From Vitrella brassicaformis CCMP3155 (taxonomy: Eukaryota; Protista; Chromerida), in NCBI GenBank assembly GCA_001179505.1, contig CDMY01000022.1:62001-126000 (forward strand): a stretch of 64,000 bases of DNA. The letters run 5' to 3'. The translations under genes and the position numbers were made by a program. Under the pieces are notes generated by a model that was not told the DNA's origin, searched no databases, and was given only the letters and a program-made list of their open reading frames with translations. This document shows positions 10,407 through 13,568 of this stretch, in pieces. Each line of letters opens with the position of its first letter. Position 1 is the first letter of the stretch.

Positions 10407-13400
10407 TCACGACAGAATGGCGGTACTCCAGCCTGTAATGGGCTGGCGGCACATGGGGCAATCCTCCAGCTGTGTGGCGCAATCCTGACACACACAGAAG
10501 TGGTTGCACGGCCGCAACACCAGGCGCCGCTCCCTTTCCTGGCATATCAGGCACGCGGCGGCCTCAACCCTTCCCTGCTGATTTTGTTCCTGCATCTGCT
10601 GGCGCAGTTCGGCCTCGCCCATCTCGCGCGTCTTGTGCTGGGCTCTGGTGAGGAGGGCCTGGAGTTGCGGCAGTTCTGTGGTGGTGATGGTGGTCAGTCG
10701 GTCAGCCAGCTGCATGGCGAAGCCCATCACCTCCTCCTTGGTAGTCAAGCCCTCAAACGTCTCAGTCAACCTGAAAGACACAATACACATGGAGAGGCAG
10801 ACCGAAATCAGTGGCTGCCATCTTCCTGTGTTAATCTATTTGTATTACTTGTCGATGTGATGGCTTCGGAGCTCCTCAATGTCGGCCTGGAGCGCCCGAC
10901 TGCTCTCATGCAGACTGACCGAGACAGACAGAGAGAATAGAGGGCATGCCCTGTCACCGTGTGTGCGCCGCCTTTGTCCCACCTGGCTATCTCTTGTCTG
11001 AGAGATTCCTCTCTAGCAGCCGAGGCCCTGCAATGCAGCAACAAGTTCACACACGAGTGTTTTGGTCATTTACACGTGCTCCTGACCTCACTCACCGTTT
11101 GTCAGCCTCCAGTTGGCGCTTGTCGCCGTCCGCCACGCGAAGTCTCTCTTGCAGCCTGCCATGGAAAGACAGCGCACATACAAGCGTGTGTCTGCTGGGA
11201 GAAGTGTGTCTTCCTCACTCGGCCGTTTGCTGACGGAGGTCACCGTTGTTGTCGACCGCACTGTGAAGAAGCAGCAGCAGGTTAACAGGTACATGCTGGG
11301 GGGGACATAAGGTGACTCTGGCAGGCCACGTGCATTGTTGGTGCCTGCCTGACCGCGCGATGTTCCTGTCCTGCTCCTCACGGGCCGCAAAGGCCGGCGC
11401 ACGCAACCTTCTCACACACCACATCTTGCGTAAGACGGTCTGGAGCACCTCCATGACGGTCTCACGCAGCGACGAGGCGTTGCACGTACCCATCGCGCTG
11501 TTGAAGTGCTTCTGCGTCACGACCATACTGTCCAGGACCTCAGCGTCGATCTCGCGCTCAAAATCGATCAAATCCATCTTCTCACGGATGCACTGAGATG
11601 CTGCTTCACTGCACAGCTGCGCCAGGTCCGCTCCCTGCGTAGTGCGCATAAGCGGCGTGGCTGGTAAGTGACAGGCTTTCGACTTACCACAAATCCTTCC
11701 GTGTTTGTAGCGAAGTCCTCTAGCCTGACGTTCTCGTGGAGCTTCATGTCGCGCGTGTGGATTCTGAGGATTTCCAGGCGACCATCATAGTTTGGCACCC
11801 CGACGCTGATCTCGCGCTCAAAACGCCCAAACTGACGAAGCGCCATATCAACCTTGTCTGGCCGGTCGGTCGCCGCTGATCAACGAAGCCAAGCACAGCA
11901 TTTGCTGCATAATTTGTGGGAGCATGTACGTTTGTTGTCTCTTGTCTTATTACCAAAGACCACCACTTGTTGGCGCTCTTTGACCCTATCCATCAGTGTC
12001 ACCAGCTGCGACGCCACGCGGCGCTCCACCTATACACAGCTCGGGCGAGCGCACATATGTGGCTAACCACGATGTTTCTTTTGTCTCTGACTGACTTCTC
12101 CATTGATCTGGTCGCCTCTTGGTGCGATAGACTCGATGTGGTCGATGAACACTATGGCGGGGCTGTTCCTTTCGGCCTCTTCGAAGGCGCGCCGCAGGAT
12201 CGTGACACCGTTGGCCATCTGGGATATCACCTCGGGCCCGTTTATGGGGAAGAAATTCGCACCTGTCTCGTTGGCAACGGCACGCGCTATCAAAGTCTTG
12301 CCGCACCCTGAACGACCATGGTGGTTAACACATACAGCCAATCACAGAGAGAGAGAGAGAGAGTGATGTTTGGTGGTCGAGGGCAGCTGGGTGTGTTTGC
12401 ATACGCGCGTGTGTGCGTGTGCATATGTGTGTACCTGGCGGTCCATACAGCAGCACACCGCAGGGCGGCTTCCTAGCCAAGTTCTGGAGAACCCTGGGGT
12501 GGCGCTGCGTGAAAGTGACCGAGCACTTTACAACATACAGGCTCACTCGGTGTGGCGGCTCACCAGTGGGACTTCGATCATTTCTCTGATCTGCGCCATT
12601 TGTCTGCGGCAGCCCCCGACATCCTCGTAGCCCACATCGTCCAGCCTCTCCTCGTCCTCGCGGATGATAGCCTCACCCTGATGACACACATCGACACACG
12701 AGACGCGAATGACATGAGGTGGCGAGCAGTAGATAGAGGGAGGGATGGCTACCTACTGCCCAGAGACTGACTGACTGACTGACTCAGTGAGTGAGAGAAG
12801 AAGGGGCCAGTCTGCCTGTGCGTGTGTGTGTGTGTGTGTGCGTGTGTGTGTATGTACACCTCGCAGTGGATGACGGTGTTCGGCGCGACGATGCAAAACT
12901 CACCAGGATCCACATCCACTACCTACAAAGGACACACTTGTGGCTATCCTTTATGTCTGTCTTGTGTGTACCTTGAATTCGACGGGCCGGAATTCGCCGC
13001 GCACAAGAAACGTGTCCCCCGTGCGCAAGGGCCGGTAGGCCTCCGTGAAGTAGGGCTTCAGGTACGTGTCGAACAAGTTGCCTGTGAGGCCCTCAATCGT
13101 GTCGGCAAAGGGCGACACGTGAATGCGCTGACCGACACACCACACACACAGACAGAGAGGAAGACCATGTAGTGGGTGCACCGTCACAGTTCGCCCGACC
13201 TGCGTACCTTCCCGTAAGCGACATCGCCGGCTGAGTAGATGGACACGATGTCGCCGAGCAACACCCGTAGGTTCTTGCGTATGACCTTGTTCATGCGGAT
13301 CTTGCCCTCGTCGAGGTCTTCTGTGTCGGCCAACACGATGCACACCGTATTGCGCTCATCGGCTTTGATCAACACTGTGTCGCCGCGCCACAAATTCAGG

Positions 13401-13568
13401 TCTGATCAATCAATCACATGAATAGACAGACACCCGACAGCGACGCCATCCAATGTCACACTCAGCCGAGGTGTGCTCACCTTCCATGCGCGTCGGGTTG
13501 AGTGCGACGACAGAGTTGTCATCGTTGACGGCTTCCTCGACAATCAGCCTGTTGACGGGTCGCAACAT
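10407..13568 (-). CDS. Chimeric gene: CDC48/p97 N domain + degenerate D1 AAA domain fused to coiled coil + C-terminal C3HC4 (IAP-type) RING; no D2
   Basis: CDC48 exons: [128 protein letters not shown]. Then five phase-2 junctions (exons 11260-11219, 11155-11096, 11027-10983, 10914-10849, 10770-10407) lead to [39 protein letters not shown]. No stop or frameshift in my splice model. Alternative ATG at 13619. Confidence 0.8.

Follow-up and report, generated by a model that had tools for sequence, protein, structure and literature searches.

A partial CDC48 duplicate joined to a coiled-coil-RING tail in Vitrella brassicaformis: a candidate ubiquitin ligase with a probable non-hydrolysing AAA scaffold

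What might a protein do that keeps the N-terminal and first AAA domains (N-D1) of the unfoldase Cdc48/p97 and carries a ubiquitin ligase module where the second AAA domain (D2) would begin? The question is raised by a minus-strand gene (13568-10407) in a 64,000-nucleotide stretch of the genome of the alga-like alveolate Vitrella brassicaformis CCMP3155 (assembly GCA_001179505.1, contig CDMY01000022.1, positions 62,001 to 126,000 of the forward strand), here called the window; unless another locus is named, positions are counted from its first letter. A preliminary description, made from the sequence by itself, had read this locus as a CDC48 N-D1 module spliced in frame to a coiled coil and a RING-type E3 domain. 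We find that it is a single gene with a single, fully spliced mRNA, and that this fusion gene is almost certainly real and functional as a protein.

Assembled from the window sequence, the gene has 15 exons and a 2019-nt coding sequence (CDS) for 672 amino acids, beginning at the ATG at 13568 and closing with the stop codon at 10409-10407. All 14 introns (49-182 nt) have GT-AG borders. The uninterrupted frame expected over some 15 exons is thus borne out, and the five junctions that had been placed after the Cdc48-like part (11354/11260, 11219/11155, 11096/11027, 10983/10914, 10849/10770) are exact and all of phase 2. The product begins with CDC48_N and CDC48_2, the double-psi barrel and beta-clam that make up a Cdc48 N domain, followed by AAA (D1) and the AAA lid; some 135 helical residues then lead to a zf-C3HC4_3 RING at the C-terminus. 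Contigs from four public runs (X1, X7, X3 and X6) were mapped onto positions 10000-14300. A 2986-nt contig from run X1 and a 2930-nt contig from run X7, which come from two studies, are spliced at every modelled intron with no mismatches, and so cross all five fusion junctions; intron 4 lies inside a masked microsatellite, and the 58 contig bases left unassigned between exons 3 and 5 fit exon 4 exactly. These RNA contigs begin in the 5' leader (at 13699 and 13643), pass the RING exon and reach at least 800 nt of 3' untranslated region (UTR), extending about 430 nt past position 10000 (positions 1789-2557 of the 2986-nt contig correspond to 10000-10768), and the polyadenylation ahead of the RING exons that the preliminary description had considered as a way for the fusion to fail is not what they show. 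Runs X3 and X6, from two further studies, contain the unspliced locus as contiguous DNA over the breakpoint (10000-12569 in X3, 11257-11607 in X6), which excludes assembly chimerism. General caution, namely that one contig over two genes does not prove a single transcript, is what speaks for the fusion being an artefact of mis-assembly or of read-through between neighbouring genes; this explanation is effectively refuted by the contiguous DNA, by the position of the junction inside an exon rather than between genes, and by the RNA contigs, which in both studies join exon 10 in frame to exon 11 and the exons after it, with no alternative contig path reported.

Where the N-terminal part comes from can be read from its closest relatives. 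Residues 1-450 are 79% identical to the native Vitrella cytosolic Cdc48 (P0158), with 86% in the N domain and 78% in D1, as against 70-73% to the proteins of Chromera, Perkinsus, apicomplexans and others. Maximum likelihood groups the fusion with Vitrella Cdc48 (support 97/97; branch lengths 0.34 for the fusion and 0.007 for the native protein), and the duplication of CDC48 therefore postdates the split from Chromera. The native gene (L001; cDNA contig L002) has 19 exons, and exons 2-9 have the same lengths and intron positions in both genes, which therefore points to duplication at the DNA level and not to a retrocopy; nine introns at parental positions rule out a retroposed origin. In a global DNA alignment exon 10 is about 85% similar between the two genes up to ...GAGACCGTCATGGAGGTGC and not at all thereafter: the homology ends after ...GAGGTGC, which places the breakpoint mid-exon at about 11445, just past ETVMEV, which makes up the conserved N-terminal half of the linker between D1 and D2 (PMC4730245). 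The end of the Cdc48 exons had been put at this same linker; the Cdc48-like part indeed stops at residue 450 and the frame runs on into LQTVLRK...NIAR. A frameshifted D2 was considered as the source of the junction peptide (exon 10 has 280 nt in the native gene and 281 nt in the fusion) and rejected, there being no similarity beyond the breakpoint in any frame. A tblastn search with the native protein found no second CDC48 copy and no D2 remnant in the window. Within N-D1 the two proteins differ in length by just three one-codon, in-frame indels. The N-D1 part is a partial DNA-level duplicate of the organism's own cytosolic CDC48, reaching from the N domain through D1 to the middle of the D1-D2 linker.

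The remainder of the protein has a different parentage. Its last 222 residues are 42-60% identical to the C-termini of the Vitrella proteins P0001, P0002, P0003, P0004 and P0016 (blastp E-values against this coiled-coil-RING family of 1e-41 to 1e-54), the similarity to P0002 and P0003 starting at fusion residue 443, and the product of exon 15 is 58-61% identical to the paralog C-termini. Over the last three exons P0002 and P0003 have their introns at the same positions and in the same phase, 2, as the fusion, whose exons 13-14 are homologous to theirs. P0001, P0002 and P0016 also have N-terminal regions in common and form one family; its overlap with the ankyrin protein P0004 and with the Cdc48 fusion is confined to the tail. 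On at least two occasions, therefore, a coiled-coil-RING cassette of symmetric phase has become attached to an unrelated N-terminus. The tail derives from the 3' part of a member of this Vitrella-only family, joined mid-exon, and is the most diverged of its members, with dS (synonymous divergence) above 1; the junction peptide, residues 451-481, is possibly a remnant of a 45-residue coiled-coil exon of the donor family. The family itself consists of long proteins (329-1976 residues), mostly lacking Pfam domains, that close with this cassette of short phase-2/phase-2 exons (L005, L006). In P0004 ankyrin repeats stand in place of the usual N-terminus, and P0003, with 329 residues, starts 115 nt after a same-strand gene call of 1350 residues and may be a split annotation.

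As for the fold of this tail, an AlphaFold2 model of the whole fusion was built on a shallow alignment of 28 rows (mean predicted local distance difference test, pLDDT, 58; N domain below 50) and used for the helical tail and the RING. It predicts helices at 486-558, 563-579 and 585-621 (pLDDT 70-84) and a folded RING (pLDDT 70-82), leaving the junction at residues 440-487 below 50. The heptad signal is modest: in the best register strong hydrophobics occupy 38% of the a/d positions versus 15% elsewhere. The heptad region named in the preliminary description is thus matched by long predicted helices over 486-621 and by a/d enrichment, and it stands less firmly than the other claims made from sequence. 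The IAP-type RING was rightly called intact: a regular-expression search recovers all eight zinc ligands between residues 625 and 659 (C-x2-C-x11-C-x-H-x3-C-x2-C-x6-C-x2-C), and by its sequence the fusion belongs to the zf-C3HC4_3 class. The closest solved structures for the RING and C-terminal tail are cIAP2 (3EB5, 1e-11), cIAP1 and XIAP, with E-values from 1e-11 to 1e-9; TGWSTAILS at the C-terminus aligns to KGTVRTFLS of cIAP2, and the Ile after the first Cys, the Pro in CPMC and the Arg after the last Cys recur as in cIAP. The RINGs of cIAP and XIAP are C-terminal and dimeric.

Does the retained D1 still work as a motor? Alignment with native Cdc48 and an outgroup polarises to the fusion branch a set of changes absent from the preliminary description: the Walker B Glu has become His (E285H, p97 E305), the sensor-1 Asn Asp (N328D, p97 N348) and the arginine finger Gln (R339Q, p97 R359), the last being a residue essential for D1 hydrolysis in p97 (PMC4730245). 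Pore loop 1 has changed on the same branch from KMAGEAEAN to QMANGVTI with a deletion of one residue (including K258Q, G261N, E262G, A263V, E264T and A265I), pore loop 2 from KRDKT to RGDQI, and the segment after the N-D1 linker from TLFKTLGV to RVLQNLAR. Nothing has changed in Walker A (GPPGCGKT) or the remainder of the nucleotide pocket, nor at the Walker B Asp, at the second Arg (p97 R362), in the VGG motif or in the lid. The positions that we take, by p97 numbering, to line the UBX/VIM cleft of the N domain are likewise unchanged at D35, V38, R53, I70, L72, Y110 and Y143, with Trp at F52; R77L presumably corresponds to p97 R95, a disease-mutated residue of the N-D1 interface. Replaced hydrolysis residues next to a kept P-loop and docking face form the pattern expected of a pseudo-ATPase that still binds nucleotide, and the fusion D1 is probably a nucleotide-binding, non-hydrolysing scaffold. 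The p97 cofactor-binding ring of the preliminary description accordingly needs rewording as a hydrolysis-dead, nucleotide-binding scaffold, since E285H, N328D, R339Q and pore loop 1 speak against a working motor. As the fusion has one AAA domain in place of the D1+D2 tandem, and only part of the D1 catalytic set of the Cdc48 family (Walker A and R362 kept; Walker B Glu, sensor-1 and R359 replaced), it descends from Cdc48 yet falls outside the Cdc48 family as a functional class.

Loss of catalytic residues raises the question of whether the gene is under constraint at all. Compared with native CDC48, the N-D1 segment has dS 0.84, dN (nonsynonymous divergence) 0.127 and omega (dN/dS) 0.15; taken per domain, as had been proposed at the outset, omega is 0.13 for N and 0.17 for D1, and the last exon compared with P0002/P0003 gives dS 1.2-1.8, dN about 0.30 and omega 0.17-0.25. 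Polarised against Chromera, amino-acid changes number 83 on the fusion branch and 4 on the native one (Tajima chi-square 71.7, p = 2e-17), a rate about 20 times that of the parent. Branch omega is about 0.29 for the fusion versus 0.013 for the native gene, and the former lies below 1 by Fisher's test (p = 5e-9) in an approximation that splits dS equally between the branches. In simulated neutral evolution with 0.42 substitutions per site N-D1 should acquire about 10 stop codons, and each of the 2000 runs lost the open frame. The neutrally decaying chimera with dN/dS near 1, which the preliminary description had envisaged as the alternative outcome, is thereby contradicted: the fusion gene is fast-evolving yet clearly under purifying selection.

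The same figures bear on the improbable explanation that this is a young gene without a settled function, a by-product of frequent gene-fragment copying that is expressed while weakly or transiently constrained, its catalytic loss reflecting relaxed constraint once D2 was absent. Such a gene would suit the restriction to a single species and the twentyfold rate, but at a dS of about 0.42 per branch its 672-codon frame is intact where some ten stops would be expected in N-D1 alone, and N, D1 and the tail each have an omega significantly lower than 1. It would equally suit the lost catalytic sites, whereas the P-loop is retained, and so is every one of the eight RING ligands. In its favour, exons 4-5 of the fusion were recently copied 14 kb away, the coiled-coil-RING tail is also joined to other N-termini, as in the ankyrin protein P0004, and two of the amino-acid changes date from very recent times; against this, length changes are limited to the three in-frame codons, and 14 of 14 introns keep GT-AG and are all spliced in the RNA contigs.

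The copy in question is an orphan CDC48 fragment on the same contig (L008:14526-14894 on CDMY01000022.1), about 3.1-3.5 kb before the window start. A very recent copy, it reproduces exons 4 and 5 of the fusion together with the intron between them and 24 nt of the next one, and differs by 4 substitutions and 2 microsatellite indels. Since the ancestral residues, Gly149 and Asp153, are still present in the fragment, the fusion's changes at 149 and 153 are very recent. Public annotation has a 500-residue gene on the minus strand there (L008 14915-11696, no Pfam match) with its ATG just upstream of the fragment, which may be a second chimeric gene. An apparent single-nucleotide polymorphism in run X3 ("T>G at 12647") was ruled out as such, being the paralogous fragment mapping to the fusion locus. 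Intron 4 (12765-12860) carries (CA)n and (TCAG)n microsatellites whose length varies among the gene, the orphan copy and run X6; run X6 has a 4-nt deletion at 12765, and these repeats drew many spurious joints and loose ends in read mapping.

What, then, might the protein do? The mechanism that we favour, and whose chances we put at even or a little less, is that of a RING E3 ligase built on a nucleotide-locked ring that mimics Cdc48 and docks its cofactors. N-D1 would no longer be a motor and would instead form a nucleotide-locked scaffold, probably a hexamer, on which UBX, SHP and VIM cofactors could still dock at Cdc48-type N domains. The nucleotide state of D1 is reported to govern the choice of adaptor (PMC3513293). 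The coiled coil and the IAP-like, probably dimeric C-terminal RING would supply E3 ligase activity, paired tails forming coiled-coil-RING dimers that ubiquitylate docked material. The fusion would thus recognise Cdc48 adaptors or ubiquitylated clients by imitating the cofactor-binding face of Cdc48, and would ubiquitylate without unfolding. Spelled out in full, as a "Cdc48-mimic ligase" in which an ATP-locked hexameric pseudo-ATPase holds its N domains in a cofactor-engaging conformation and three coiled-coil-linked RING dimers ubiquitylate captured UBX/SHP/VIM adaptors together with ubiquitylated clients, the proposal is possible but doubtful.

Several observations weigh against the favoured mechanism. 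Ring assembly may have suffered from the 83 substitutions, among them R339Q at the subunit interface and R77L, and the AlphaFold2 model, given its shallow alignment, is uninformative on the N domain and on oligomerisation. Expression is seen at the mRNA level, in contigs that show presence rather than abundance. The fusion-branch omega of 0.29 is far more relaxed than that of the parent gene, and the gene occurs in one species only, without comparative support for a conserved function.

D1 is also the domain that drives p97 hexamerisation, and this established property is what would allow a further, unlikely, explanation: the fusion could insert into native Cdc48 hexamers through D1, either bringing a RING to the unfoldase or acting as a D2-less, hydrolysis-dead modulator or poison subunit. 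The two D1 domains remain 78% identical and both genes are transcribed (the native one as cDNA contig L002, the fusion as the contigs described above). However, a D2-less subunit with a long coiled coil in the place of D2 would clash with the D2 ring or break it, the arginine finger that would act in trans on a native neighbour is lost (R339Q), and the coiled coil and IAP-type RING favour homodimeric pairing of identical neighbouring subunits.

The protein is not unknown to databases: our model is residue-for-residue the same as P0154 (CEL91780.1; UniProt A0A0G4E879, V. brassicaformis CCMP3155), an automatic, uncharacterised entry labelled "RING-type domain-containing protein" that lacks functional annotation. 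Its 90% cluster has three members, which are the same in sequence except for the start site and include the MMETSP transcript open reading frame (ORF) P0155. A tandem duplication of 51 bp (13559-13662) has doubled the start codon. Translation from the upstream ATG, which lies in frame at 13619 and is where P0155 begins, would give 689 residues, adding a basic 17-residue extension, MLRHRYRHRHPATRRES, that could be a targeting signal or one like a nuclear localisation signal. Both starts are overlapped by an upstream ORF of 32 codons, whose own ATG, at about 13641, is out of frame. Further upstream a gene on the same strand ends about 60 nt before the start of the fusion transcript contig (the 3' end of X7 contig 19 is at 13759). 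Around 13759-14300 public annotation places an 834-residue CPL-domain gene on the opposite strand (L007 5114-9707), an apparent mismatch with the same-strand contig. Coordinates are collected in Table 1.

Table 1. Features of the fusion gene and its product, by window position or, for Pfam matches, by protein residue
Feature	Position	Strand	Basis
Fusion CDS, complete	10407..13568	-	exon assembly; same as CEL91780.1; spliced RNA contigs X1, X7
Exon 1	13568-13481	-	
Exon 2	13401-13208	-	
Exon 3	13127-12972	-	
Exon 4	12922-12860	-	
Exon 5	12677-12564	-	
Exon 6	12504-12435	-	
Exon 7	12307-12096	-	
Exon 8	12029-11954	-	
Exon 9	11875-11688	-	
Exon 10	11634-11354	-	
Exon 11	11260-11219	-	
Exon 12	11155-11096	-	
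Exon 13	11027-10983	-	
Exon 14	10914-10849	-	
Exon 15	10770-10407	-	
Exons 1-4, Cdc48 N domain (CDC48_N, CDC48_2)	12860..13568	-	Pfam; exon match to native CDC48; omega 0.13
D1 segment (AAA + AAA_lid_3)	11446..12677	-	Pfam; alignment to native Cdc48; branch-specific changes
Recombination breakpoint inside exon 10	11444..11446	-	global DNA alignment with native CDC48 exon 10
Junction peptide, residues 451-481	11354..11445	-	AlphaFold2 low confidence/flexible
Exons 11-14, four short symmetric phase-2/phase-2 coiled-coil exons (42, 60, 45, 66 nt)	10849..11260	-	RNA-contig junctions
Exon 15, coiled-coil end + RING + C-terminal tail TGWSTAILS	10407..10770	-	Pfam zf-C3HC4_3; paralog C-termini
RING finger C3HC4, C625-C659	10449..10553	-	regular expression; PDB matches
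51-bp tandem duplication in 5' leader	13559..13662	-	Tandem Repeats Finder (TRF), 2.0 copies, 96% match
3' UTR	10000..10406	-	RNA contigs
Pfam CDC48_N	residues 7-87		E 2e-21
Pfam CDC48_2	residues 109-169		E 4e-8
Pfam AAA	residues 222-350		E 1.5e-37
Pfam AAA_lid_3	residues 373-413		E 5e-13
Pfam zf-C3HC4_3	residues 623-664		E 2e-14

Is the architecture found elsewhere? The preliminary description knew of no other case, and the combination of N-D1, coiled coil and IAP-type RING was found in no other organism by our searches, which report best hits and fall short of a full architecture query. When the coiled-coil-RING exon was run through an exhaustive HMMER search and the eight closest tail relatives were scanned with Pfam, none of these eight showed Cdc48 domains; among the matches listed by a word-indexed search with the P0002 tail are P0002, P0004 and the fusion protein only; PF13920 is absent from the other 119 best hits of the N-D1 search; and the ESM Atlas gave no cluster combining Cdc48 N-D1 with a RING. 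We found no description of it in the literature on Cdc48 in Vitrella, on RINGs combined with CDC48_N, or on RINGs and gene fusions involving p97 N-D1.

Laboratories make N-D1 fragments and Walker B or arginine-finger mutants of p97 to separate cofactor docking and ring assembly from unfolding. The fusion amounts to a natural p97 experiment, an evolved equivalent of these constructs that has been retained under selection with a ubiquitin ligase attached. Should the cofactor-docking mechanism be true, it would represent a new coupling in which the ligase bears the docking face of the unfoldase rather than a motif that binds the unfoldase, and, in its fully specified form, the first known E3 whose substrate receptor is a Cdc48 N-D1 ring reused without motor function. 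Independently of function, the locus offers a dated gene birth by exon shuffling in which the parent genes, the mid-exon breakpoint, the intron phases and the later catalytic loss are all visible together. The case comes from one little-studied alga, and its function is inferred only.

Set beside Cdc48/p97/VCP (native P0158; the N-D1 truncations PDB 1E32 and 1S3S), the fusion keeps the N domain, D1 and first linker half at 79% identity to the parent, and its end point at residue 450 (about p97 471) lies within the range of p97 N-D1 constructs that crystallise as hexamers. Unlike Cdc48/p97, it lacks D2, the main motor, in whose place stand the coiled coil and RING, and its Walker B Glu, sensor-1, R359 and pore loop 1 are replaced. 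With the RINGs of cIAP1, cIAP2 and XIAP it shares the ligand spacing, the extreme C-terminal position and the short hydrophobic tail, but the likeness to the IAPs is limited to about 55 residues: BIR, CARD and UBA domains are absent and a long coiled coil precedes the RING. In relation to the Vitrella coiled-coil-RING family, the last 230 or so residues are homologous and have the same phase-2 introns, whereas the N-terminal parts are unrelated. Inactive AAA rings of the Cdc48 family that bind nucleotide without hydrolysis and serve assembly have precedents in the D1 of Pex1/Pex6 and the D2 of NSF; these, however, adjoin an active ring in the same polypeptide, and the fusion retains none. AAA+ modules and a RING E3 are also united in a single polypeptide in RNF213/mysterin, a giant monomer with dynein-like AAA units; RNF213 lacks a Cdc48 N domain and is evolutionarily unrelated. 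Finally, gp78/AMFR, Hrd1 and Ufd2 are E3 ligases that dock onto p97 through VIM, VBM or UBX motifs: whereas these carry a motif that binds the p97 N domain, in the fusion the arrangement is inverted, the N domain being part of the protein.

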